Source: Tetramitus jugosus (lineage: Eukaryota > Protista > Heterolobosea). Taken from it: DNA of 64,000 bases. Below, piece by piece: positions 16,793 to 64,000 of the stretch; the first letter of the stretch is position 1; every line of letters begins with the position of its first letter. The notes under the pieces are model-generated. The model was not told where the DNA came from, made no database searches, and saw only the letters and a program-made list of their open reading frames with translations. Both the position numbers and the translations under genes were made by a program. Where the stretch lies: the NCBI GenBank assembly GCA_937625935.1, contig OW569367.1, positions 427,108-491,107 of the forward strand, in the 5' to 3' direction.

Positions 16793-18097
16793 TTAAATGC
16801 CGTAGCGAAGTTTCAAAGGACAATTTCTTACACAACAATTGGCAATAGAGTTGCTGAGTTGCTCCTCTGTGTCCAAACTAAGGACAGTATCAAAGCTCCT
16901 CTTCATCATGTCCATCTCGAGGCTCATTCTCTTCATATCTCTTTCTAGGACAGAAATCCGATTCTTCATATTTGCGTTCTGCTCCTCGAGATCAGCTTTC
17001 TGCTCTTTCAACTCCTTGTTCAGCTCTTCAAGTCTGACGTTCTGCTCTTCAAGTCTGATATTCTGATTCTTCAGATTTGCATTCTGCTCTTCGAGATCAG
17101 CTTTCTGCTCCTTCAACTCCTTGTTCTGCTCTTCAAGTCTGATATTCTGATTCTTCAGAGTTGCATTCTGCTCCTCGAGATCAGCCTTCTGCTCTTTCAA
17201 CTCCTTGTTCAGCTTGTCAAGTCTGATATTCTGGTTCTTCAGAGTTGCGTTCTGCTCCTCGAGATCAGCCTTCTGCTCTTTCAACTCCTTGTTCAGCTCT
17301 TCAAGTCTGGTATTCTGGTTCTTCAGATTTGCGTTCTGCTCTTCGAGATCAACCTTCTGCTCTTTCAACTCCTTGTTCAGCTCTTCAAGTCTGACGTTCT
17401 GCTCTTCAAGTCTGACTTTCTGCTCTTCAAGCTTATTTCGAATAACGACATTCTCTTTTTGGAGCTTTTCAATGAAAAACATCACCTGCTCATTGAGGCC
17501 ACTTCCTTTAGACACTGAAACCAATTCTTCTTCAACAACTCCCCCCTGGACAGCTCCATGAGTACTATCGATTGGATTAACGGTTTGTTCAGAGCTGTAC
17601 TCTTCTAAATCTCCAGGACCTTCCTTTTGGCTTTCATTCTCAGTCTTTGTTTGCTCTTCCAAGGGTTCAACATTCGGGGGGAGAGCTTCTTGAGGTTGTT
17701 GTCGCTGTACTTTTGGTGCTTCCTTTCTCTGACCTTTGTCTTTGGTATTCTTCTTTTTGGTTGAAGCGAGTGTAGGCATCTTGTTTTCAGAAGTTTTTTT
17801 ATCAGCTTTTCCTTTGTTTTTTCGAGTCTTTGGATTCTCAAAGCTCTCAATAAGTTGCATACTTTCCTCTTCAATTTTCTTCAGTTCTTTGTCAAACCTA
17901 TCCAAAATAATAGCTCTGTTGTTAGCAATATGAATGGTAGCTTCAACTGTTGAAGTTGGTTGTGGAAGAACCCTCATGACATAAAACCACAGTCTGTCTC
18001 TGTGAACACTGTTTGTGTTCAGCCAGACACTTGGACGTTCAATAGTGAGGAGACGGTTCAACTCTTCTAGGAATGGGTCAATATTTATCTCAGTCAT
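16793..18097 (-). CDS. Coiled-coil protein with a 28-aa tandem repeat; the only full-length member of a 3-copy local family
   Basis: ORF from ATG 18097 (MTEINIDPF); repeats of LEELNKELKEQKADLEEQNANLKNQNIR. Confidence 0.65.
   Translation of the reverse strand: MTEINIDPFLEELNRLLTIERPSVWLNTNSVHRDRLWFYVMRVLPQPTSTVEATIHIANNRAIILDRFDKELKKIEEESMQLIESFENPKTRKNKGKADKKTSENKMPTLASTKKKNTKDKGQRKEAPKVQRQQPQEALPPNVEPLEEQTKTENESQKEGPGDLEEYSSEQTVNPIDSTHGAVQGGVVEEELVSVSKGSGLNEQVMFFIEKLQKENVVIRNKLEEQKVRLEEQNVRLEELNKELKEQKVDLEEQNANLKNQNTRLEELNKELKEQKADLEEQNATLKNQNIRLDKLNKELKEQKADLEEQNATLKNQNIRLEEQNKELKEQKADLEEQNANLKNQNIRLEEQNVRLEELNKELKEQKADLEEQNANMKNRISVLERDMKRMSLEMDMMKRSFDTVLSLDTEEQLSNSIANCCVRNCPLKLRYGI
16975..17430 (-). 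repeat. Coding minisatellite, 84-bp unit built from 21-bp (heptad) subunits
   Basis: TTCTGCTCTTCAAGTCTG / TTCTGCTCCTCGAGATCAGC units recur on the + strand. Confidence 0.9.
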
Positions 18098-21000
18098 GTT
18101 TCTTTTGTGTGCAACAGCTCTCCAGTTTTTTGAAATTTTGTCTGTAAATCTCGGTTGGCTCCACTCCCAACATTGAATGTTCAACCAGTTGCTTGTTGTT
18201 GGGTCTCATGATGCGGCGATAACCAAAGGTCCAACATCTCTTCATGGGAATTCACTCATTCAATCTTCCTCTCTCTGCTCTTACTCATCACTCTGACTAA
18301 AGTCTTTCTCAACCTCTTAAGTCAATCGACTTCAAACAACGCACAAGTAAACAAAAAATCAAAAAAACACAATGATTCTCGGCTCTCAAAAAATCATTCG
18401 TTGTATAGAAAGGTCTTGTATTTTGTTTCATATCAGCAGATAATCAGGTCATCACAGCTTCCTATTGGCTACTTTCGAGCAGTTCATCTCTGAGACATGT
18501 CAAAATCTTGCCCAACAAGTTCAATCCCTTCCATTTCGATCGATCCTTGCACTCATCGACATCTTGTTCACTCCAACCAATGCCCCAGATGTTGTCACGA
18601 GGTGAAGCCTCAACAAACTCCTTCGTGAATCTACGGAAAGGAGATGTGCGGAAAAGATGGGAACCGTACCCATGTCCGAGCGGACTATAGTGTGTACGGA
18701 GAGTTTTTTGTAATACAACACAGTTGCCATGTCGGTAACGGACTCAATTTGTAAAGGACGAGCGTCAACCAATCAAAAAGTAAAATGGAGAAACAGCTGG
18801 ATTTTGTTTTTAAACAAAAAACGCTGTTCTCCATCTCTTACGTTCTCGGAGAGCATCGCATCTTTCTTATCCACAACTCTGGAAAACCAAGGGCCTTTCG
18901 ACGCGCTACCTCTGGTTTCATTCCAATTCTAGAAAGTGGATAATCATCTGTTCGATCGTTATCAAGCACCACCTTACCTGAGATACTCCTTGACCATCAG
19001 GTAATTGATTAAATCAAGTTCTTCACAACGTCATTGAATAACTTCGTACAAGTCGTTATTTCACACTTCAAATTGAACATGGAACCCATCTCTTGACAGA
19101 GTGTAAGTGGTTCTTGCATTCCAACTGTGATACAATTCTGCACACATACATTTTTCTCAATCTTCGAGAACAATCTTTCATACCACAGCCATTACCAACA
19201 TATGTGTTTATATTATAGCTATAATAACTCAAAACTTCTGATCCTTTCATCATTAAAAATATTTTTCCTCAGCTGAACAACTTGAACAATGGCATAGTTG
19301 TCAGATTGTACATCATTCACGGGTACTTTGGGAGTCATCAAGTTAGATATGATCACGTTGTTCTTAGACAAGCCATGAAGTAACCTCAGTCGAAGCCAGA
19401 CTGGCAATGCTTTATCACCTTGGTACGCTTATCGCTAGTGATCAGAACAATTTTTGAGCAAGTGTCATAGAGCTTTCCTGGTCGCACTACTTTTCGATCA
19501 AGTACTTTTTTCCCGCTGCAGCTGAATACAAAATAATCCACTGTAGCGAAATGTCGCACAAGAGAAGGAGTTTAAGTCATGACAGCAACGAGAAGCAATT
19601 CCAAGAAGCAACCAAACTACAATGCACCTCACTCACAGCAATTCTGCCCAGGACTCAAGCGAGACAATACACAAGCATCGAGTGATAAACCAAGAGCCTT
19701 ACTAGATGGAAACAACCCTTTGTTTAGAAAGTCATGTGAGATCAATCGCGGGATGGAATTCTGCACAACTGCCCGTACCATACTATGGAACCGTTTGCAA
19801 CCCAATGTACTTCAATATGATCGAAATCTTGTCATTGGTTCTTGTCCTCATCATGTTCTCAACCTTTGGGTTAAGATGCAAGGGGAACATAAAACGAGAA
19901 GTACGCGATATGTTAACGGTGAAAAACAGAAAGTTCGATTTGATCATTATATTTTTGAAGCAACGATGCCTGATCTTGGTGGACATTGGACTGTTAAGTG
20001 TTTCCAAAGAGGAACAACACTTTTCAGAGTGTTCTACACTAGAGTTTCGTTCATCATCAATACTATAGACTACCGAGTATACTGCTCTTGGACACAAGAA
20101 ACACAGTTCTTTGGTTTCCAATCGAAATGGTGGAGTGTTTAGAAGTTAGTTTGATCAGAATTATACTAACAAGAATTGATACGACCAAGTGGAAGTTCCA
20201 ATCTGGGTTCCTCTCCCAATCAATTGTTACATTCTGTATCGCAATGAGAGGGGATTGAGCTAGAATCGTTTTGGGTGGTTCTTGTCCCAATTGACATTGG
20301 TTCCATCCACCTTGTACTTTTTGACGGCTTCCACAAACAATTTTGAGATAGGTCATAGTGACACAACACTGAGTACTCACAGTGAATGAAGGAGATGGGG
20401 CATCACCAATCACAATGTTGGTACGTCCGTTCTTTTGTGAGACAGTCAGCTCTTTCCGTTGAACCTTATTCGAACTCCCAGACACACGGTTCAAGCATTG
20501 TCAGGCAATGGACACCCTTAGTATACTTTTGAAGGATGATTACCAATACACAGCCAGCCACTCTTGGATATAGATGGGCCAATTCCTCAGATGGTCCTGG
20601 TAACAAAGTGCTCCAGAACTTCGGCACTCATTTGTCGGATTTGTACAATTGCTAGATGGATTTGGGAACTGGATCAGTACGGAAACCGAAATAATGAACA
20701 TTGAAATTCGTTTGGGAGTTACGAGAGCCAAACACACATTCAATGAAATAGACTTCTCGGCCTGTTGTGTTGTTTGGTGTCTGAAGGACTTGGCATTGAA
20801 ATACGGAATGATAGGTTCACAGGATTGTATGTATCCAATTTCTCACGGTTAATTGATGCATCAATGCTAGATCATCTATTGTCACATTGAGTTGTTGTTT
20901 TCCCACGTTTGTGACCATGCCCCAATAAAATTGTTGTTGTTGTTGATTTGGTCATACACGATCGAAGCTCCAGATATCTCAGTAGGAGCAAATAGAGAAT

Positions 21001-24000
21001 ATGGAAATTTACTCCAGGTAATGAGGTCCCAGATGGTTGTCCGACATTTTGGACATTCCATTAATCTTGAAATTCTTCTGTACCGTTCAAAAAGGGAGCC
21101 AACGTTGTATCATCAAGAGTACGGCGATTTGTTTTGGTGTTGCTTGTCATAAAGTTAAGGCGTTCTATTCCTTCTGTATTCATTTTCCATACCAACAACC
21201 ACTATTGACACCATCGATGAAAGTGTTTGTGATATGCTTGGCCACCATACGATATGTTTTCTTTTTGAAGAAAGACCAATCATAGAATGCGACTGAAGCC
21301 CAGTACTCCACTTTTGAAACTTGATCTTGAGTTGGGCAATGACTTTTCATTACTTCAATCCATTTGCGCAGAGCCAGTTTCGATACACAATCATTACTCT
21401 TAATCATTGATTCAATTTTTGGCCTTATCAACAGAACTGTGGAAGCAGCGTAACATGGAATCATGATTCTCTTTGTCATTGTTTTTTCAGACAAAAAAAT
21501 CAAAGTTGATACCTAATCTATCGAGCAGTTGTTGAACCAAAATGAGGGTTGGAAACACTATTGGCAGTATAGTTGAAGAACGTTCACTCAATAATGAACA
21601 TGCCGACTCAATAATGTTAGTCACACTGTACGAATACTTGTACTCATCGTCCCTTAAACGTTGAACAAATAGGTTCTTGTCTGTTACTATCGCATCATAT
21701 ACAATCTGATCTCGCAAACTTTTCCAATTGACGAGCAACAAATGTGATGTCAAACATTACCCGCTCTGGTCCATACGTTTTAGATGCTGAAGAAGGGTAG
21801 TCATTGAGAGTTTTGATGCGACCAATAAGATTATTGTCCATATCGTGTTCACACCCAAGACATGATTTCGTGCCCCAAAGAACGCTGCCAGTTCTTTGTA
21901 ATCTGAACATAAGAACATATCGAACAACACCAGTTCGCGAGTTCCGTCCCATCGTTTTACCAACAAATAGTATTTTTTAAACGCATCAAAGTAGTTTTCG
22001 AACAAGTATCTATTCAACCATTGCATGTTAATTTGGGTTTCTGTTAATTCCATGTATGCAATAAGAGTGAAATATAAAAGGAGGGTCTTGAGTTTCCAAC
22101 TGTTCCCACTGGGAACAAGCAAACCAAAGTTTTATCCTTTCGGAATTGTTCGTTTAGTATCGCAACTGAAAAGCCAAGAATGCTTCTTCAACTTAATGAC
22201 AATGGTTCCGTCCTCGTTCATCGAAAAGCTATTCGATAGCATACTTGGGATAATCTCATGAAAGCTCACACATCAAAGAGAGCACTAACACTTGTTGTGA
22301 ATCCTTCATGGGCAAAACTCTTTCCAAGTAGAATCTCATCAAAGCAAGTCGTGAGTACTTGTCGGAGATCTTGTCATAGTGCAGCAGTGACAAGCTCTGG
22401 TGAAGCATATTCTTGAGTGAACATACTGGATGGAGCAACTAATACTGCTAAATTCTCTAACTGCTAGACATAGGATGGTGATCTTTCTTTCATTGAAAGA
22501 CACGGGCAAACGCGAAACCATTGTGATCACACCCATTGAGTCTGGAGCATCTTCTATTTCAAATCGAAATGCATTGAATAGACGGATATGACTCGGAGAA
22601 GCCAATTAATTTCCTTCGGAAGCTAGAGAATTTCGACAGTATGCAAAGAGGTTCTTGCAAGAGATAGACTCGTCGTGGTCTGTGACTGGTGGAAGGTACT
22701 ACGTTTCGTTACGGGGTGTATTGCGAGTAGTCTGTAAATGTCGTTTATGCTCACTACTGGATGGATTTCCAGATTATTTTGAATCAAGTCATACTCCTAG
22801 TGTTGCCACTGTCGCTAGATATTCCTCATTGATATTAGTAACATATTTTCGACAATTGAGGTATCCATAATATTTTGCCGATCAGAAACTTCTAGATTAA
22901 ATCGACTTTGAAGAAAAATTGTGAAAAGAGTCCTATCTTTGCGTTTGAAGGAGATCGACAATCAATTGAAAACAATGAAAAAAGAAGCAGTGTTCATGAA
23001 AAGCTATTGCAATCTCACAGACATGCAATGGTTAAAACTGAGGTACTTCTTTGTCAAAAAAGGAAGAATATGATATTTGTAACGACGATATGTGGTGTAG
23101 ATTTTACACTGTCCATTTGTTAGCTTGAAGGTGAAAGAGGGGAGAATCATATCAAAGCGAAGCTTTACAATCGAATGCCGCTTGGACAGATGCCGATTAA
23201 GGGTCGTGGCTTTGTTTTTACTCTTTCCATTGTTCGAACTTATTGATTAATTTCGTGAAATTCTCTAGGGCACACTAAATCTGACCATCTGATGTCAACA
23301 CAGACGATTAATCACCTGCGACAACTTGATTCACTGGCAGACCAAGTACTGTTGTACACACATGAAGAGGATATCTGTTGTTGTTCCGTGACCAGTTGTC
23401 CTTTGCGTTGGCACCTCAAATATAAACACCTTGAGTCAGAGCAACCAGAATTGGTCTGTTTCCGCATTGTCAATAGTCATGAAATGTTCTTCTTGGGTCC
23501 TGAAGTATCGTTCGCTCAAAGTAGTTTTTGCTTTCTTGTTGGTTCAAAAAAACTTGACGGCGTTTTTCACAGCGGTGGAAACAACAAAACAATCACCAGA
23601 CTGAAGCTCGGCTTTGTGAAAGAAAAGTCGATAAATTGGTCGGTTTGACAGTGAAGATGTTAGTACCGTCTTTTCCACGTAGTTTTCCTCTCTGTCCATC
23701 TCCCCGAAAACTAACTGCATCTTCAAGTATTTTGACTGAATTGAGCTCTACTATGATCAGTGTCTTTAACACGGTTATCAAACAACACTCAATTCCCACC
23801 AAGCATTTGCGGGATACATCTTTAATTCTCGATTGGAAAAGACTTCAGTGATAAGTGAATTTACTTTCTACGGTTACAGAGTGATGTTAGTGATGGGAAA
23901 TCCATTAGATTGATCATTCGGTAGAGGTATTAGTATGCGTGATCACTAGATGGATTCTGTTAAAGAAATTGGTCCAGAGTGTAATTATTCTTATGTGTTT

Positions 24001-25255
24001 TTGAAGCAATTCGTTGAAAATTAGCCTTTGACCGCTTTGCATATGGTCGTATGATGTGAAGCAGAGTTTTCTCGATAAATCAAATAAAATGTAAGAATGG
24101 GAATGAGAGATTGATTTAATACCTGTAACATTTGGGAGAATGTCTGCTCGGAATGTTCGTACTGATGGAGTATCAACCTATTTATTCAATTTAAGTATCT
24201 AGAAGAGGCATCGCAAGATTTGATGGTGATCGCTTTGATTACAAATGCTAAGTCGCCAGAGCAAGTATCATTGATATAAAATGTTATTATATCATATTAT
24301 TATGGATTTTATGGTAAGTCAGTCGGAGTTTTATCTGACCAAGATAGATCAACAAACGAATAATTGATCAGCAATTGGATCTCATTCGTCACTATGAATA
24401 TTTATTGTCAGTGAATAGTATACCACTCATGTCACCTTTCGTTTTTACAGCACCATCCACCCTATCAACCACCACAGCAGTTCCAACACCATCAACTCAA
24501 TCCATTGATACTTCAAATGTGTGGGATCGTTAGTGTGATATGCCACACTTCGCCTGAACTTTATTCTGCGACAAAAGATAATAGAAGGGAATTAGTCCGT
24601 CTTATGAATGATACAGATGTGATTGGTATCTCCCTTACTCCGAGGAGATGTCTTGTCAAACTTCAGATTTCCTAACTTGGAAACTACGTAACTAGAATGG
24701 TTGAGAAACATGGTGGTTATGATCACTGTAAAGACATGAAGCTATTTACGAAAATAGCTAAACTTATTGGTAGATGGTTTCTGGGTATCAAATCCCAGTT
24801 CGATCTTTGCCCCGTGCTGATTCAGTAATGAAAGAACAGAAGCAATATCTTGTTGGAATGGACAATTCCGCTCAGATTCGAAGTTGTGTCAAGAAAGAAA
24901 ACGACAAATACTTTGTGCACTATTGCTGTTTCACAGAAAGTGTGCTGATTTTTGGGCGCGTGGCTGGTCTGGCGGGAAATCCAATGGTCGTCCCAGGACA
25001 CGTGATGGATTGCGGTCGCCCGAACAAATCCAGGTCGAATCCAGGTTTTGTAATCCAGGCAACCAACGTCAAATAAAAGTCGGTTGGTTTCTTTCACCAA
25101 CCAAAACAACAACAATGACACAACAACAGTCACAACAACCATCACAACCACAACAAGAAGAGGAGTATGAAGTTTCTGCACTCTGGGGGATGAGAAAAAG
25201 AAGAAAAAGGAACCAGTTCTTGGTTCAATGGGCGGACCCCTACTCCAACATCGAA

Positions 25256-28200
25256 GCGATGCTAAGAAAAACCCGATCCCTAACCAACAAACCCGATGAG
25301 CCAAGATCAAGGTCCAAAAAATCCCATGGAACGAAAGACCCGAACAATAAACCATCATGAGAACTCATACAGAACACAAACTTTCATGGATGTAGATATA
25401 GAGTTTCGCGCCTAAATTTTCGCGGGAAACACAATAAAAACCAAAATGAAACGAACGCAAACCACACCCACAAAGACCGGACTAACTCCTACCCAAAAAA
25501 GAAGAAGAAGAAGAGTCCAACACAAAGAAACTCGTGTTAAATCATCTTTTTCCCTTTCACAGCTCGACTTTGAAAAAACATCTATTATTCGCTTAAAAGA
25601 AATTTGCAGAGATAACAGAATTAACGACAAAGCTAATGCAAAAATTGTGCTTATCGCAAGGATGATGGATCATTTTCGTGATCATTCAAGAATTGAGTTA
25701 TTTGACACTCATGACATTGCAAATATCTGCCACACATTGGGCCTCAGTTCATATGGAACAAGAGAAGAGAAAATTCAAAGATGTATTGATCATATCTCCA
25801 AGAATGAACAAGAAGACCGTAGCCAATATGAGAAAGATGATACCCTTGTTGAGCCAAGTGTTCTGGATTTATCTCAAGAACTTGGACACCTCGATCTGGA
25901 AACTGATGCTGAACTTCCAGAAGACGAATCAACCATGTTACTGACGGAGAATCATTGCAATGGAGATTCTGGTAGGACAGAGTCTATCGACGGACAAAAT
26001 ATACAGCAGATAGTAGTAGAAGATACAACTGTTTTCGGCGGCGAGGAACTTCAAGAGGAAGAAGAGATGACAGATGCACAAACTGTGTTTAGGACAATTC
26101 CTAAGGTACTATTCTTAGAGAAAAGAAAATTGAGAATGGAGCCCACAGAAACTAGTGGTACATGGGCCAATACTGACTTTGGAAGCGAATTCATTTTTGT
26201 GGCTCGTTGTCATGTTTGCTATATTGAGTCAAAACTCCAAGAAATCCCTTTCTTTCAAACAATTATTGGAAGCCACGAACTGAAGATGAATGAATCAAGT
26301 AAGGTTGTGAATGAACCAATATTGAGGGAACATAACTACAAATTATTGAATGTGCGTTTAAAGAAACGCTTTCCCTATTCAAATAACCCAGATCTTCCAG
26401 GAAAAAGTATTTTGTTTTACGAAACAGTATTTTGTAAGCATCCTCTTTGTTTGGAATCCAAAGGGTCGTTTCTGAAGAGAGTGGGGAAGGTCAAGTACCT
26501 TACAAACTGTTCTGCTAAAGGCAAAATCGTTATTTACAACGATGATACCAGTCAAGCTTTTATCTATGCGAAAGGACAACATGATAGTACGTTTATTCCC
26601 TCAATTGACCCTCGCAGAATAACACCGGATAAACGAGAACAAGTGGTAGAGGCCTACAACACACTTAAGCCAACTGTAAAAAGGTTGTCACATGCTACAG
26701 GACTTTCTAGAAAACAAGTCACCTCTATCATCCAATATGAGAAAAAGTCAAAGCAATTAGCTTCAGATCCTTTCTTGTCGTTCAAGCTGAGATTAGCGAA
26801 GTTGAATGGAACGAAGGATATTGTCGTCCTCGTTCCAAGTGGTATGACACTTATGGATATGAACGAAACAAATTATGTTGTTCTTGTCCTTAATGAGAAA
26901 CTGGTCGACATAGGCCTGAATAGCGGTAAGGGGAAACTGATTCAAGGCATAGACTCAGTTTTTAAGATTACAAGTTTTCATTCCCCCATCAATGTTATTG
27001 CCACAATTGATGACAACTTTAAAGGAGTAATACAGGCGATATCAATTGCTCATGACAATAGTCACCAAACATTAATGCAGATATTGGATACCTTCCTCCA
27101 ATACAATAAGCGAAAGGATCCCAACTTTCGACCACAGTGGATGATGGATGCCGCTAAAGCCAACTTAAGTGCTATGCGTCGACTCAGCCTCCCCTATACG
27201 CTATGTCGATTCCATATCTCAGAAAGATGGAAAAAACATCTATCAAAGCTTCCATCACAAGTTCAAAAAGAACTCGCGAAACATCTGGTTTACATGGGCA
27301 TATCAAAAGATAGTGAAACATACTTGAAGTACTACGGTCAGTTTCAGAAGTACTGTAAGAAACAAGATGAGAAGACCAAGAACTTTTTGCAATACTTCAA
27401 TCAAAAGTATCATAGTTGTCACGAATCATGGACAGCGGAATCTAGACTCTTGGATATGAACAGTATCGGGAACACGAACAACATCTGTGAGAGTCAAATA
27501 AGACTTCTGGAAGAAACTGCTTCTTCGAGAGTAATTCAAAGATTGGACTATGTTATCGACCCAGTTGTGGAACGATTGCAGGAAAATTACGAGACTCTCG
27601 GTGATATAACACTTCCTGCTCCCAAAACTGTACAAGAGTTTAACAAGCGTCTTGAGAAGGGTATTGTATACCATAATAGTGGATACGTTCGAAAATTTAT
27701 TGGTGCAGAATACGTTTACCGCATACAGAAACCTGATAGTGATGATATTCACTACTGTGATATCAGGGGTATGTTTTGCAATTGTCTCGATTATGTTAAT
27801 AACTTTGGAAGGGTATGTAAACATCTGAACGCTGCAATGGTGACTTTTGCCGTTGAGAATGGAGTGAGAGATGTTGAAAGAGATGGATTTAAGTTCTTGC
27901 AAGTGATCAAGGATATCGTTAATAAGAAAGATTCCGCTCCTTCTAGTGTTGAAGTACTGAATTGCACTAATCGTGTACAGAATTTGGTAGGAGCTCCTGT
28001 TGCCTCAAGAAAACCATCTAGAAAGTTTCCTTTGAGAAAAAAAACAGGTCCCAAGAAGAAACAGAACGTTCTTGAAGTGGATTCAACCAACCAAGTTTCG
28101 ATTGAGAATGTTCTTGGAGTGAAAAAGAATTCAGCAGGAAATCCAGTCTTCTTGGTAACAGTCAATGGATCTAATATATGGGAAGAACAGCAGTATATAC

Positions 28201-28541
28201 GTGAATCCGACTTGCTTGAAGAGTTTCTTGAAGAGCTTATTGAGCTATATTCGACGTTAAGACAGAGATCAGAGAATGATCATGTAGTTATTGAGGAAGT
28301 TCGTTATATTGATGATGGTTATAAGTTGCGTGTACGAGGAAATGATTCTTTTACTCGTATCACTAAAGAACACAAGGTCCCACTGTTCTACTATTTGGCT
28401 CAATTTACTAATGTTGATGTTCAATAAAGCTTCTTTTGATCGGGTTTTTTAAGTTGTCAGGGTTGTTTGGTCGTGACCACAGGGTTTTTCTGTAATCGGA
28501 TTTTAATGGCCGGAACATCGGGTCTTTAGGATTTTCACCGG
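25256..28541 (+). mobile_element. Mutator-like element (MULE), 3286 bp, 9-bp TSD, no long TIRs
   Basis: AACATCGAA at 25247-25255 and 28542-28550. AAACCCGAT-like motifs at 25269, 25289, 25334 and inverted at 28439, 28495, 28517. Confidence 0.9.
25446..28427 (+). CDS. MULE transposase: SAP-like x2, WRKY/FAR1-like Zn finger, DDE core, SWIM finger, C-terminal chromo-like segment
   Basis: Catalytic motifs IDSVFK (D1), MMDAAKANLSAM (D2), CRFH and TNNICES (E); SWIM CNCLDY...VCKHL. Uninterrupted 993-aa ORF with AATAAA at the stop. Confidence 0.9.
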   Translation: MKRTQTTPTKTGLTPTQKRRRRRVQHKETRVKSSFSLSQLDFEKTSIIRLKEICRDNRINDKANAKIVLIARMMDHFRDHSRIELFDTHDIANICHTLGLSSYGTREEKIQRCIDHISKNEQEDRSQYEKDDTLVEPSVLDLSQELGHLDLETDAELPEDESTMLLTENHCNGDSGRTESIDGQNIQQIVVEDTTVFGGEELQEEEEMTDAQTVFRTIPKVLFLEKRKLRMEPTETSGTWANTDFGSEFIFVARCHVCYIESKLQEIPFFQTIIGSHELKMNESSKVVNEPILREHNYKLLNVRLKKRFPYSNNPDLPGKSILFYETVFCKHPLCLESKGSFLKRVGKVKYLTNCSAKGKIVIYNDDTSQAFIYAKGQHDSTFIPSIDPRRITPDKREQVVEAYNTLKPTVKRLSHATGLSRKQVTSIIQYEKKSKQLASDPFLSFKLRLAKLNGTKDIVVLVPSGMTLMDMNETNYVVLVLNEKLVDIGLNSGKGKLIQGIDSVFKITSFHSPINVIATIDDNFKGVIQAISIAHDNSHQTLMQILDTFLQYNKRKDPNFRPQWMMDAAKANLSAMRRLSLPYTLCRFHISERWKKHLSKLPSQVQKELAKHLVYMGISKDSETYLKYYGQFQKYCKKQDEKTKNFLQYFNQKYHSCHESWTAESRLLDMNSIGNTNNICESQIRLLEETASSRVIQRLDYVIDPVVERLQENYETLGDITLPAPKTVQEFNKRLEKGIVYHNSGYVRKFIGAEYVYRIQKPDSDDIHYCDIRGMFCNCLDYVNNFGRVCKHLNAAMVTFAVENGVRDVERDGFKFLQVIKDIVNKKDSAPSSVEVLNCTNRVQNLVGAPVASRKPSRKFPLRKKTGPKKKQNVLEVDSTNQVSIENVLGVKKNSAGNPVFLVTVNGSNIWEEQQYIRESDLLEEFLEELIELYSTLRQRSENDHVVIEEVRYIDDGYKLRVRGNDSFTRITKEHKVPLFYYLAQFTNVDVQ

Positions 28542-28831
28542 AACATCGAACATGACTCCTGGGAATGGGAGGAGGACATCTCCAAAGAACTTGTACAAGA
28601 GTTTCTGTCAAAGTATAATCCTAGACGTCGGCTTGAACTGTATTACTTACAGCGTCATAAAAGAATCCCGGTCTATCTTGAATCAGGTCATGGAATCAAG
28701 AAGAAGAAGAACAAGAAGAAGAAGAAGAACAACAAGAAGAAATAAAAACCAGAATAGAAAACGAGGCGGATGACTGCGTCCTTGTATCATGAGTGGCAGT
28801 CAAAAAAATCCGAGTCCGTTTATTCTGGTGC

Positions 28832-29829
28832 TTAGCTTCTTCTCCATTTTGACGCACAGTGAGCAACACAATGTTCGACATGGCCTACAGTGATGGATGA
28901 CAGGGAATTATTGATTGCTTGGACAAGAGATATTTGCTCGTATGTATAATATTTCAAATTACTTTTGAACAATGCAAACACTAACTCAATTGGATTGAAA
29001 TCTGGTGAGTATGGCGATAAAAACAACTATTGCATACCGATTTCATTCTTTGTATCACACGCTCGGAACGATGAATACGAGCATTGTCAAGAACAACAAC
29101 ATGGTAGTGTTGAAGATATGGCCTCAATTGCTCGAGAAATGCGAGGAAATCTTCCTGATTTATGCCATTATGAGTCGTGTTCTTCACATAGGGACTTATC
29201 AATCTATTACTGGTCATACCCAGAATGACGCTATAGGACTCTCGATTAAGATAGTGTTGATGCACTTCAACTTGTTCTCCTGAGCGAACATAGCCGTACC
29301 TTCGGCACAGGTCCCTTCTGTCCACATGTGTTTCGTCAATGAACACGAATTGATCGAGCAAATAGAGAACAGCCGTTCGACAAAAGGACCTCCTTAACAT
29401 CTGGACCCTTTCAGACATTCTCCTCATGGCAACAAGAGTCAGTCTCCTCCTCTTAAACAGAAGGATGTGTCTCCTGATCTTACACAAGAAGGACAATGAG
29501 ATATTGTGATGTAAATGTCTCGATATCAACACTTTCAACTCCCAGAGATAGAGAGTTGGGTCTAGGAGGACCAATAGTTCTACAAATCGAACTAGATACT
29601 GCTTGTGCGGTTGATTTGATATCGGCCTTCCTAATGGACGTAACGGTGAGTTCAAGTGCGTGAGATACTTTCGAACTGTTCGGATATCCAGAGACAGTTG
29701 CAAGGCCACAAGAGTTTCATCTCTGACGATGTCATATCTTTCAACGATTTTTCGTTGTAATTGTGGTGATAGTCGTTGTCCTCTTGTTGACATAGATGAT
29801 TTGCGTTGATTTTTTGAACGGAGAATCAT
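28832..29829 (-). pseudogene. IS630/Tc1 DDE transposase, single frameshift at the A5 run 29019-29023
   Basis: N-terminal HTH + GRP, then FIDET, VLDNARIH and FLSPYSPDFNPIE. One extra base in the homopolymer joins the two ORFs. Confidence 0.92.
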
Positions 29830-29858
29830 GATTTATTGATCAACATGATGATTGAACT

Positions 29859-31176
29859 TCAATGACCGGGGTTCCTACATATTGGACAACTGGGTTCCCT
29901 TGGCCTGACGTAGTTCATTTCGATAATTTCTCCATCAGCATCAATCTCCACACTACCCCAATCCCCGGTGCGCTGGGAATCGAACCAGCGATGGATGCAT
30001 GTTGAATGGAACAAGTGTCCACAAGGTAGGCGCGAGTTCGTCCTGTCTTATGATATCGTAGCACACAACACACTCATCCTCTGATGGATCTGGCTGTATT
30101 TGACTATCATCCTCATCCATATCGGGTAGTTCGTCCCGGTGATACTGCGATGAGTTCGTGATGACTGTGGTGGAAGTATTCTCCACGATTGTCAGGGCAG
30201 TAGGTTGAGAGGACATAATCAAGGAGTCGCAGATGGCAGCAGCTCTCGTCAAACCCTGATTCAATCGATGAAGTTCGGACTGATACAATCTCGCTCTTTC
30301 CTGAGCCTCTTGAGCAACTTGATGAAGATGTTGAACATGATTGGTTAATCTGGAAACAAAACTCTGGACATCATGGTGATTTGCTGGGTTCACGTTGAGA
30401 TAGATGTTGTTGTTGATCATATTAGGGAGCTCCTCATCTACAAACTCCATATTAATCTGAGATTCGGCCAAATTTTCTGTCTCTGTTGAGTTTGGGCGGA
30501 TGGGAGTTTATATATCGTCCGGGTTTCCCTGTATATCTTCATCGTCACTGACTTCATCCAGTTGAGATGAAATAGCAGGAAGACCCAATGTTCTACGGCG
30601 TATGTTATCGGGTTGATATATGTTGGAGTGAATGTTGTTGTTATGAATATCTCTGTGAAGACGCTGTGTCTCCAATAGTGCGCTCATATTTCTATCAGAT
30701 GTCTGGCTAAAGAATGAATCGTTCAAACGATCTACCTGTTGAGTAATCTGACCTCTCTGTGTATTCCTCTCTCTATACATTCGGATCCATGACTCTTTGT
30801 TATTCTCTATGTATTGATCCATATGTGCGAGTGCAGAAGAGCAATATAAGGCCCAGTTGGTTGCATTGGGACGACACGGGAGTCTCATATCCTTTCCTTG
30901 ATGAGAAAATCTTTGATGTCTTGTGTAAATATCCTTCCAGAAAGATTCAAGATCTCCTATAAATTCATCTCTGGTGATATTCCAACTCAAGAGTGCACTC
31001 TCCACCTTTCGAACAAAGATGTTTGAAACATTGACTCTGTTACCCAAGGTTCTCTGTGATGTTGCTTGTGATTGTGAATTGTATGGATGAGATTCGTGTG
31101 ACAGTGTAGTGGGAGAACTTACTGTAGAGAGTTGTTGAAGTCCACTCCCACTTTGATTTGATGAAATTGTTCTCAT
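29859..31176 (-). pseudogene. ~439-aa protein with a C-terminal RING-H2 finger (putative E3 ligase), transposon cargo
   Basis: ORFs 31176-30508 and 30471-29953 are in one frame, separated by a single TAA (DDI*TPIRPNSTETENLAES). A frameshift at ~30030-30034 hides LPCGHLFHSTCIHRWF...CPICR, which completes CVVC. Confidence 0.85.
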
Positions 31177-31888
31177 TTAATTGCCTTGTTTTTCTTAACT
31201 TGTTTGTCTGTTTTTTCACACATGCGGCACAAGTGTGACTTGTGACAAGCCTCAGCCATGCCTCAGCCATGGATGGGATCGTGGTTTGAGGGTCGGGGTG
31301 TCCTGGTGTCTGTGGTTGGGATGTCTGGGCGGGCCGACCCGCATCCTTTTCGTGAAACAGCAATAGACGTTAGGTCTCTTGCACTTGATGTGGATGGGAA
31401 GATTTATCGGTTTCGTATTATGAGTTCGATGGTACTTCTGTTGATTCGAATGTACAAACTATGGAATCTCGGTATCATCAACAACGAACTATGTGGCGAT
31501 TAATCCATCGAATAAAGCGAGTGGCACGATGATTCAAAGGTAGAGAAGGCCGGTAGGCTCGACTTTTCTTTGCAATTACGATTGAACCCCCAAGAACTCT
31601 TCCGTTCTGACCTTACAGACAAGCAGAAAAGTCAAGTCAAGAAGATTATGGTCGTGTTGTACACATGGAACTTTGGTTCCTTTCCTTGCCAACTCACAGA
31701 GACCGGCTTGACAGAGGTGGAGACTTCTGTTCGATCAATCCGAGCAACCAACAACAACGCTTCCTCTTTAAGAGCGCCCGAAGTTTGGCAGATAACAAGG
31801 ATGCTAATCTTGACCTCAAGGTTGCAGCCGGCGGAGATTCATATTTGCGATGTAAAGTGATTCCAATGTCACTGATGAGAGTGCTGCT

Positions 31889-32747
31889 ATGTATGGAACT
31901 CAGTATCATGATATTACATTTCAACTGTTGGTTGAGAGGATTCAAAGAAATCATCTTGAAGAACCAAAGAATCCTTATGGTTTAGTTCGGACTTGTTGTA
32001 ACTTTTCTGGGCACTTCACTTCCAGAGAAAGGTTCGATTGTTCTGCCCATCCCCTACATAGGATTTTGAATTATGTAACTGAACATAGAATCTTGGCTAA
32101 TTTGAGTAGAACTTCATACGATGAATATGACAGAGCTCTAAATTGTATCTACAAGGTGAGGTTAAACTTCACGATGTTCATTGTGATGGGTGGTCATTTA
32201 AGTGCAAGTTCAAAGAACAAGATTCGATATTTGAGGCTACATTATCTCTTTCTGACCTGACCAAGTGGATCAATAACTGTAGTAGAAGCTGCAATTGCAC
32301 AAATACTATATACCGCCATCTTCTTGTGCCCTTGATCTATCTGCACTTCAATAGGAAGAACAGAAAGCTTGAAGATTTCGAATTACATCGTATTAAGAGA
32401 TGGTCTGACGTATCGCACAACATCCCTGGAAGATATCATCGGACCTTGGAGTGGTTCAGAGATGAAGTTCCTCTGTTGGAAACGGAAGATAAATTTGATA
32501 CTTCTCTCGAAGAGAGCCGAATCAAAGATGAGTTTGGGGAGTATGTCACAAAGAGCAATATGAATCACAGCGACGCAAAATTATGTGCTCTAAAATCACA
32601 AACAATTCATTTTGGTAAGGATGATAACCTCATAACAAACTATGAACCCCATGGAGTTCATTCGACAGTACTCTTGGAAACATGTGATGCGGGTTTCTCC
32701 AGAGAAGACGATGACCATGAAATTCAACTTGCTCCAGCTGTTATTCC
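31889..32747 (+). pseudogene. Frameshifted SWIM zinc-finger-like ORF remnant
   Basis: YDRALNCIYK/GEVKLHDVHCDGWSFKCKF...SCNCTNTIYRHLLVPL resembles CxC-x4-CxH with the third Cys replaced by Tyr. Confidence 0.4.
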
Positions 32748-34142
32748 CAGAAATTTGCAGTCATGTACAAGCGCAAGGTTCTTCCAACACTGGTAGATTG
32801 GTTTGGTGGAGTACCTGCATGTATCAAGGACTACATGGACCTCCAGAATAACAACTTAACCTCAGCATCTCCAGAGAAGAGCGATGCACCTGTTGAAAAA
32901 TCAGGCTGTTTATTGATCACCACGATTTAAATGCCGTAGCGAAGTTTCAAAGGACAATTTCTTACACAACAATTGGCAATAGAGTTGAAACTAAGGACAG
33001 TATCAAAGCTCCTCTTCATCATGTCCAGCTCGAGGCTCACTCTCTTCATCTAGGACAGAAATCCGATCGATTGGATTAACGGTTTGTTCAGAGCTGTACT
33101 CTTCTAAATCCCCAGGACCTTCCTTTTGGCTTACATTCTCAGTCTTTGTTTGCTCTTCCAAGAAGAAAGATTCAACATTCGGGGGGAGAGCTTCTTGAGG
33201 TTTTTGTCGCTGTACTTTTGGTGCTTCCTTTCTCTGACCTTTGTCTTTGGTATTCTTTTTGGTTGAAGCGAGTGCAGCCATCTTGTTTTGAGCTTTTCCT
33301 TTGTTTTTTCGAGTCTTTGGATTCTCAAAGCTCTCAATAAGTTGCATACTTTCCTCTTCAATTTTCTTCAGTTCTTTGTCAAACCTATCCAAAATAATAG
33401 CTCTGTTGTTAGCAATATGAATGGTAGCTTCAACTGTTGAAGTTGGTTGTGGAAGAACCCTCATGACATAAAACCACAGTCTGTCTCTGTGAACACTGTT
33501 TGTGTTCTGCCAGACACTTGGACGTTCAATAGCGAGGAGACGGTACAACTCTTCTAGGAATGGGTCAATATTTATCTCAGTCATGTTTCTTTTGTGTGTA
33601 ACAGCTTTCCAGTTTTTTGAAATTTTGTCTGTAAATCTCGGTTGGCTCCACTCCCAACATTGAATGTTCAACCAGTTGCTTGTTGTTTGGCATCATTACG
33701 CGGCGATAACCAAAGGTCCAACACCTCTTCATGGGAATTCACTTATTCAATCTTCCTCTCTCTGCTCTTACTCATCACTCTTGACTCTCAAGTCTTTCTC
33801 AACCTCTTAAGTCGATCGACTTCAAACAACGCACAAGTAAAGATCATCTCTTCCTCACACCACGCTCAAGGTGCCATTGGAGCAATACCCATTCTCGGCT
33901 CTCAAAAAATCATTCGTTGTATAAAAAAAGGTCTTGTATTTTATTTCATATCAGCAGATAATCAGGTCATCACAGCTTCCTATTGGCTACTTTCGAGCAG
34001 TTCATCTCTGAGACATGTCAAAATCTTGCCCAACAAGTTCAATCCCTTCCATTTTGATCGATCCTTGCACTCATCGACATCTTGTTCACTCCAACCAATG
34101 CCCCAGATGTTGTCACGAGGTGAAGCTTCAACAAACTCCTTC
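32748..34142 (+). repeat. Copy 2 of the triplicated segment, with multiple internal deletions
   Basis: Begins CAGAAATTTGCAGTC like 16439 and ends CAAACTCCTTC like 18624. Lacks the coiled-coil repeat and most of MAEA. Confidence 0.95.
33003..33584 (-). pseudogene. Internally deleted copy of the 16793-18097 coiled-coil gene
   Basis: Same N-terminal ~190 aa; the deletion joins ..VNPID directly to RISVL. Confidence 0.8.
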
Positions 34143-63394: not shown

Positions 63395-63831
63395 TTTGGG
63401 TTTGGTTTGGGTTTGGGTTGGGGTTTGGGGGTTGGGGTTGGGGGTGGGGTTGGGGGGGTTGGGGGGTTGGGGGTGGGTTTGGTGGGGGGTTGGGTTTGGG
63501 TTTGGGTGGGTTGGGGGGGGGGGTGGGGGGGGGGGGGTGGGGGGTGGGGGGGGTTGGGTGTGGGGGTGGGGGTGGGTTGGGGTGGGGGTTGGGTTGGGGT
63601 GGGGTTGGGGGGGGTGGGGTTGGGGGGGGGGTGGGGGGGGGGGGGGTGGGGGGGGGGGGGGGGGTGGGTGGGGGGGGGGGTGGGGGGGGGGGTGTGGGGG
63701 TGGGGGTTGGGGGTGGGGGTGGGGGGGGGGGGGGGGGGGGGGGGGGGGGTGGGGGGGGGGGGGGGGGGGGGTGGGGGGGGGGGTGGGGGGGGGTGGGGGG
63801 GGGGGGGGGGGGGGGGGGGGTGGGGGGGGGT

Positions 63832-63909
<78 letters not shown>

Positions 63910-63936
63910 GGGGGGGGGGGGGGGGGGGGGGGGGGT

Positions 63937-63972
<36 letters not shown>

Positions 63973-64000
63973 GGGGGGGGGGGGTTTGGTGGTATTGGGT
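63395..64000 (+). repeat. Telomeric array (TTTGGG-type) degrading into poly-G
   Basis: TTTGGGTTTGGTTTGGGTTTGGG... then T1-3/Gn runs to the window end, with the G-rich strand pointing outward. Confidence 0.88.

Follow-up and report, generated by a model that had tools for sequence, protein, structure and literature searches.

A decayed DNA transposon of Tetramitus jugosus raises the question of whether the chromodomain and RING-H2 genes found between its ends belong to it and, if so, what they did for it. The element lies at 24923-31363 of the window, by which we mean the whole 64,000-nucleotide stretch analysed (contig OW569367.1, positions 427,108 to 491,107), and is an IS630-Tc1-mariner (ITm) element with a TA duplication on each side. 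The preliminary description, made from the letters of the window, read it as a three-gene ITm transposon whose two additional genes are cargo belonging to the element. That reading is upheld.

Searches of the genome (26,350,207 bases in 56 contigs) identified eight other loci, all decayed and deletion-riddled copies of 70-96% identity with the same gene order. On contigs C38, C47, and C32, parts of the chromodomain, RING, and transposase genes all survive, arranged as in the window. The C17 and C4 copies link the chromodomain gene to the end of the transposase gene, and the C15 copy links the RING gene to the right terminal inverted repeat (TIR). Close matches to either cargo gene were found by protein searches of the genome only in copies of the element. 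Two refuting conditions set in the preliminary description were thus checked and did not apply: other copies do carry the cargo, and no single-copy host version of either gene was found. The C47 locus (C47:122300-125240) comprises two decayed copies in inverted orientation with a common outer flank, which marks them as one insertion, duplicated locally in inverted form together with its flank, rather than two.

All three genes were under purifying selection in the past. Pairwise codon counts between the window and older copies gave pooled dN/dS values of 0.14 for the chromodomain gene (p 9e-9), 0.51 for the RING gene (p 3e-5), and 0.37 for the transposase gene (p 9e-4), against 0.86-1.42 in shifted-frame controls. 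Both cargo genes, for which the preliminary description had suggested this check, fall below the controls, and of the three genes constraint is tightest on the chromodomain gene. As neutral decay pushes dN/dS towards 1, the past constraint was at least as strong as these values indicate. Suggestive of transcription of the RING gene are contigs from X12, an oligo-dT run carrying another organism label, which cover this gene, with none over the transposase body or the chromodomain gene.

The window copy itself is dead. The chromodomain gene is split by a Mutator-like element (MULE), the RING gene carries a stop and a frameshift, and the transposase gene carries a frameshift. The three-gene layout first described is correct, but the intactness of the genes, which was not questioned then, is lost in all three. 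Tiny introns were rejected as the cause of the breaks, since other copies read through in frame and the related transposase P0001 is continuous. Assembly error is unlikely, as a contig from the groundwater run X3 aligns gap-free across the transposase frameshift. In local analyses X stood in for the broken positions of the RING and transposase genes, and local alignments were made with the MULE taken out; database searches and fold models used separate pieces of the chromodomain and RING proteins rather than joined proteins. A repeat survey put the transposable element content of T. jugosus at only 0.14%, with no word of Tc1, mariner, or IS630 in its text (bioRxiv 10.64898/2026.06.24.734286).

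The ends of the element are fixed by other copies. The TIRs are perfect over 12 of 12 positions and match at 19 of 23 when extended, with TA at both ends, as first described. The chance of finding TA plus the 12-bp core alone is ~8% in 8.5 kb, which is weak by itself, so the ends rest on the copies. The alignment of a C47 copy begins at 24924 and that of the C15 copy runs to 31361, each fixing its end independently, and three X3 contigs break off at 24921 into other flanks. The subterminal repeats and three AATAAA sites were likewise found where the preliminary description placed them, and the left motifs are likely extra transposase-binding sites. The length after removal of the MULE is 3146 bp, in agreement with the earlier figure, and the MULE-free form exists in the C38 and C17 copies and at joints in runs X1 and X3; run X3 contains the MULE-filled form as well. 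A genome search with both flanks found no locus that joins them, and no long reading frame crosses the empty-site junction. A search for the TIR pattern across the genome gave 29 matches, nearly all of which are chance when the downstream bases are compared. The proposed preference for CTAG does not extend to the family, as the empty sites of relatives read TTAG, TTAC, and GTAG; across four elements the contexts are CTAG, TTAG, TTAC, and GTAG.

ITm transposases bind the TIRs of their element, excise it, and insert it at TA. The window transposase gives a DDE_3 (PF13358) match (E 5e-14), contains D-E-T, D-N-A, and N-P-I-E motifs, and shares 56% identity with the intact DD34E transposase P0001. 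An L-G-R-P linker that aligns with P0001 corresponds to the GRPR-like linker of the N-terminal paired helix-turn-helix region, and residues 18-57 of P0001 have a weak helix-turn-helix match in the PDB (E 0.007). The D-E spacing is 34 in the nine close relatives listed; in the window copy the frameshift falls inside this interval. A scan of JGI metagenomes was dominated by generic IS630-like matches at 25-33%.

The RING protein consists of a low-complexity N-terminus, a middle that is probably a coiled coil, an acidic linker, and a C-terminal C3H2C3 RING with an insert of ~30 residues. The finger scores above the cut-off for zf-RING_2 (PF13639), with all eight zinc ligands present across the frameshift. 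Both breaks are lesions of the window copy. The in-frame stop, TAA at 30508-30510, reads CAA in X3, X12, and contig L161; C32 and L161 encode the RING without a frame change, and read-through forms occur in C32, L161, X1, X3, and X12. The RING gene ends 30 bp upstream of the transposase start codon, in tandem, and this arrangement is kept in L161 (where the junction is 93% identical at the DNA level) and in the more distant L066. The latter, a metagenome contig in the European Nucleotide Archive (ENA), encodes the same RING-H2, insert included, directly upstream of an intact transposase 56% identical to that of the window. In both the window and L066 the finger retains the eight ligands together with two hallmarks of E2 binding, the Trp of the helix and an Arg that follows the last Cys. 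An Atlas search with the N-terminal piece of the protein gave no match.

The chromodomain product is 111 residues long once its two parts are joined. On the uninterrupted C38 copy, PF00385 matches over positions 9-52 (E 3e-5). The best score, 24.3 bits against a cut-off of 25.1, was obtained on a copy that is missing residues, and the profile matched in two pieces. Of the aromatic cage, a Tyr and the Trp are in register and the third aromatic, also a Tyr, is one residue off. The features of the element are given in Table 1.

Table 1. Coordinates of the ITm element in the window, the MULE nested in it, and four complete relatives on other contigs.
Feature	Position	Strand	Remarks
Left TA target-site duplication	24921..24922	none	X3 contigs diverge just outside 24921
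Left TIR	24923..24945	+	starts TTGCTGTTTCAC; 12 bp perfect, 19/23 extended
Left subterminal motifs	24993..25059	+	CCAGGACAC (24993), AATCCAGG x3 (25027, 25038, 25052); retained in C38 copy
Chromodomain gene, 5' part	25115..25255	+	Q-rich leader, first chromodomain strands; PF00385 positions 1-25, E 0.03
Nested MULE-type element, not part of ITm element	25256..28541	+	intact 993-aa reading frame 25446-28427
Chromodomain gene, 3' part	28551..28745	+	last strand, helix, conserved extension, Lys-rich tail; stop within AATAAA at 28741
ITm DDE transposase gene	28832..29829	-	~330 aa; frameshift 29027-29037, between second D and E
RING-H2 cargo gene	29859..31176	-	~438 aa; in-frame stop 30508-30510, frameshift near 30035
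Right subterminal motifs	31249..31306	-	GCCTCAGCCAT x2 (31249, 31260), inverted CCAGGACAC (31298); one GCCTCA unit in C15 copy
Right TIR	31341..31363	-	C15 copy aligns up to 31361
Right TA target-site duplication	31364..31365	none
Relative L157, Acrasis kona	L157:5775-8145		2367 bp, 2 genes; convergent Q/P-rich cargo reading frame
Relative L158, Acrasis kona	L158:5825-8416		2588 bp, 2 genes, 130-bp TIRs; convergent Q/P-rich cargo reading frame
Relative L067	L067:18-2990		2969 bp, 3 tandem genes, 36-bp inverted ends; unannotated cargo of 87 and 358 aa
Relative L162	L162:1-3779		3775 bp, 5 genes, perfect 28-bp inverted repeat (TA included); gene-dense 22% GC contig

The MULE of ~3.3 kb inserted within the chromodomain gene is flanked by a 9-bp target-site duplication, AACATCGAA, at 25247-25255 and 28542-28550. 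A partial copy, 98.5% identical, lies at C4:2101-4256 near the tip of C4, which ends in telomere-like repeats. The C-terminus of the MULE transposase (28059-28427, + strand) may adopt a chromodomain-like fold. Foldseek, run on a low-confidence model, returned mostly chromodomains among the top matches (CDY1, Rhino, CDYL2), with probabilities of 0.94-0.99 and E values of 0.03-0.06 for the top five. Elsewhere the genome encodes four related C-termini. With the chromodomain gene of the ITm element, this would place chromo-type domains in two unrelated DNA transposons at one locus. The flanks of the ITm element (18600-24920 and 31366-33000) form a gene-poor, decayed island, the left side of which contains no open reading frame (ORF) of at least 200 aa and is repeated at 82-90% near several chromosome ends. 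A stretch of ~500 bp is duplicated on both sides of the island (~17800-18300 and 33290-33780) with 94% protein identity. The window ends, at 63395-64000, in a chromosome end whose TTTGGG-type repeats degrade into poly-G, probably a low-quality consensus.

Beyond T. jugosus, a profile search found many related transposases. In a tree of 121 rows, 62 including the window, DD34E wherever this was scored, fall on one side of a branch with 96 support in the Shimodaira-Hasegawa-like approximate likelihood ratio test (SH-aLRT), apart from unnamed IS630-like metagenome rows. The named members of this clade are from Acrasis kona, where they lie among nuclear genes. Four relatives are complete; each carries extra genes and shows TA and then TT at either end, and three of the four begin TTG/TTA-x-x-GTTT like the window element. 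The cargo ORFs of the two A. kona elements encode 298 and 406 aa in L157 and L158, respectively, without a significant Pfam match, and the L067 cargo is acidic and probably coiled coil. The contig of L162 may be viral or come from an AT-rich protist. On four further, partial contigs the neighbouring genes are tightly packed. A Pfam scan found no chromodomain or RING in the cargo of these relatives. In P0007, the nearest relative after P0001, the upstream gene lacks the finger and shows weak similarity (score 88-93, z 3.7) to the central part of the RING protein. The multi-gene state thus looks like a trait of the clade and the chromodomain and RING pair a trait of a sub-lineage, the clade apparently being an undescribed protist group with exchangeable accessory genes.

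The window element lacks the defining features of the multi-gene ITm elements TBE, Tec, and Dici. TBE of Oxytricha likewise has three ORFs, one small ORF lying opposite the other two, with a zinc-finger accessory protein and purifying selection on all ORFs, and its transposase is DD34E (PMC4724952, PMC7325037), as in the close relatives of the window transposase. However, the TIR tips of TBE are telomere-like and its duplication is ANT, in place of TTGC tips and TA, and its cargo is a 22-kD protein of unknown nature and a 57-kD zinc-finger/kinase protein rather than a chromodomain and RING-H2 pair. Tec of Euplotes shares three ORFs, one of them on the complementary strand, and is itself DD34E (PMC7325037), but its TIRs of ~700 bp and its ORF for a site-specific recombinase are not seen in the window element. 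Dici of Diutina catenulata has three coding sequences, short TIRs, a TA duplication, DD34E, and a transposase that is central in position and on the IS630 side, related to Gambol and Hiker (bioRxiv 10.1101/2025.11.06.686975). It differs in TIRs that start CAGT or CACCT against TTGC, in transposases of 432-478 aa against ~330 aa, and in a cargo of a small unknown protein and a transposase relic. TBE and Tec, named in the preliminary description as multi-gene exceptions, are indeed multi-gene, but with Dici and the clade described here they are not the only ones.

Other transposable elements (TEs) carry comparable domains in other forms. RAGL transposons are the closest functional analogy, with TIRs, convergent genes, a RING zinc finger, and a PHD methyl-lysine reader on the partner protein (PMC7204232). 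They are not homologous, having a Transib-type transposase, a 5-bp target-site duplication, the RING fused to the transposase, and the reader on a kelch protein. Recruitment of Chromo readers by TEs is recurrent, and chromoviruses and hAT-Chromo encode such readers fused to a TE enzyme (bioRxiv 10.1101/2021.11.30.470311), whereas the reader in the window is a free-standing gene of 111 aa. The vanC gene of VANDAL/Hiun is an anti-silencing accessory gene, but of a plant MULE (PMC6446971) rather than an ITm element. In the part of the open-access literature covered, outside which Repbase lies, neither this clade nor an ITm element that carries a chromodomain and a RING-H2 finger on genes of their own was found described. 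Multi-gene ITm elements and TE-borne readers are already known, while the chromodomain and RING-H2 pair is apparently new.

The reading we favour, at about an even chance of being right, is that the cargo genes were acquired separately as accessory genes for element-level counter-defence against the chromatin and ubiquitin defences of the host. The family would have consisted of autonomous cut-and-paste ITm transposons, now extinct in this genome, with a transposase that would bind the TIRs, excise the element, and reinsert it at TA. The small basic chromodomain protein would bind methyl-lysine chromatin, such as H3K9me-type silencing marks on element copies, and act as a decoy for host readers or displace them. 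The RING-H2 protein would recruit a host E2 and ubiquitinate a silencing or surveillance factor of the host. The two proteins were probably acquired separately and would not need to form a single complex. The genome encodes such host machinery, with at least eight other chromodomain genes and 22 SET matches.

Several observations weigh against this reading. No intact copy was found, every copy in the genome being broken. The chromodomain linkage is known from this organism alone, and no homologue was found outside it in a search that covered 0.55-1.75x lengths and needed shared words. The third cage aromatic is displaced by one position relative to HP1-type domains, and a single-sequence fold model of the truncated C38 chromodomain matched nothing. 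The RING frame of L066 has no upstream start codon and may be broken or spliced, and the P0007 upstream gene without a finger indicates that the RING is dispensable in the clade. The dN/dS p-values are optimistic, since every comparison includes the window branch and none is independent of the others. Lastly, the RNA contigs have little depth and may stem from DNA.

A bolder form of counter-defence, for which we see a rather limited chance, joins the two proteins into one reader-plus-ubiquitin-writer machine. This machine, built by the transposon as a functional parallel of CBX-RING1, would settle on silenced element copies and remove or rewrite host repression there. Its genes would form one cargo set of a large ITm clade of protists in which counter-defence genes are exchanged, much as anti-defence genes are among phages. 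The comparison with CBX and RING1 drawn in the preliminary description is a resemblance only, the domains here being on two separate genes. Comparably doubtful is target-site tethering, in which the chromodomain protein would act in trans as an adaptor, guiding the transpososome into methylated heterochromatin as a safe haven, as the chromodomains of chromovirus integrases do in cis. The strong constraint on the chromodomain gene and the precedent of MAGGY, whose chromodomain targets H3K9me regions, are consistent with tethering. The copies also lie in gene-poor pockets, with a long-ORF cover of 0.29 within 1.5 kb against 0.73 in control loci, but survival of old dead copies in gene-poor DNA is expected whatever the targeting, and complete relatives transpose without a chromodomain gene.

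Self-regulation is less likely again. Under this explanation the RING protein would ubiquitinate the transposase of its own element or help to dismantle the post-integration complex, limiting damage to a compact genome. The tandem placement of the RING gene close before the transposase gene, kept in L066 and L161, would suit such a role, as would the RING zinc finger on RAG1L transposases (PMC7204232). However, the P0007 upstream gene without a RING and the unrelated coiled-coil or acidic proteins of other clade members argue against it. Passive, Pack-type capture, by which host gene fragments were picked up once with no benefit to the element, is improbable. Cargo does vary among clade members, all copies here are decayed, and RING and chromodomains are common host domains, but no host donor was found in the genome, selection acted among element copies, and the RING linkage persists at 56% transposase identity. 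Least probable is a viral origin, by which an IS630-like unit carrying chromo and RING genes of viral descent would have passed from a giant amoeba virus into the host genome. Despite the CBX-like Chromo genes of giant viruses (bioRxiv 10.1101/2021.11.30.470311) and a weak PHROG match adjoining L162 in its gene-dense, 22% GC contig, scans of IMG/VR gave nothing related to the transposase, the RING, or the chromodomain, PHROG contains no match for the cargo genes, the GC content equals that of the host, and the named relatives lie among Acrasis nuclear genes.

ITm transposons are the textbook single-gene elements, and the extra genes of the few multi-gene exceptions have had no known function. 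Here the cargo has recognisable reader and ligase domains and was selected at the level of the element, which makes the role of ITm accessory genes testable with two small domains. More broadly, the clade comprises 62 transposase clusters, and each of its four complete relatives is multi-gene. It offers a reservoir of candidate anti-silencing proteins from Discoba and further protists not yet sampled, among which transposon silencing has barely been studied.

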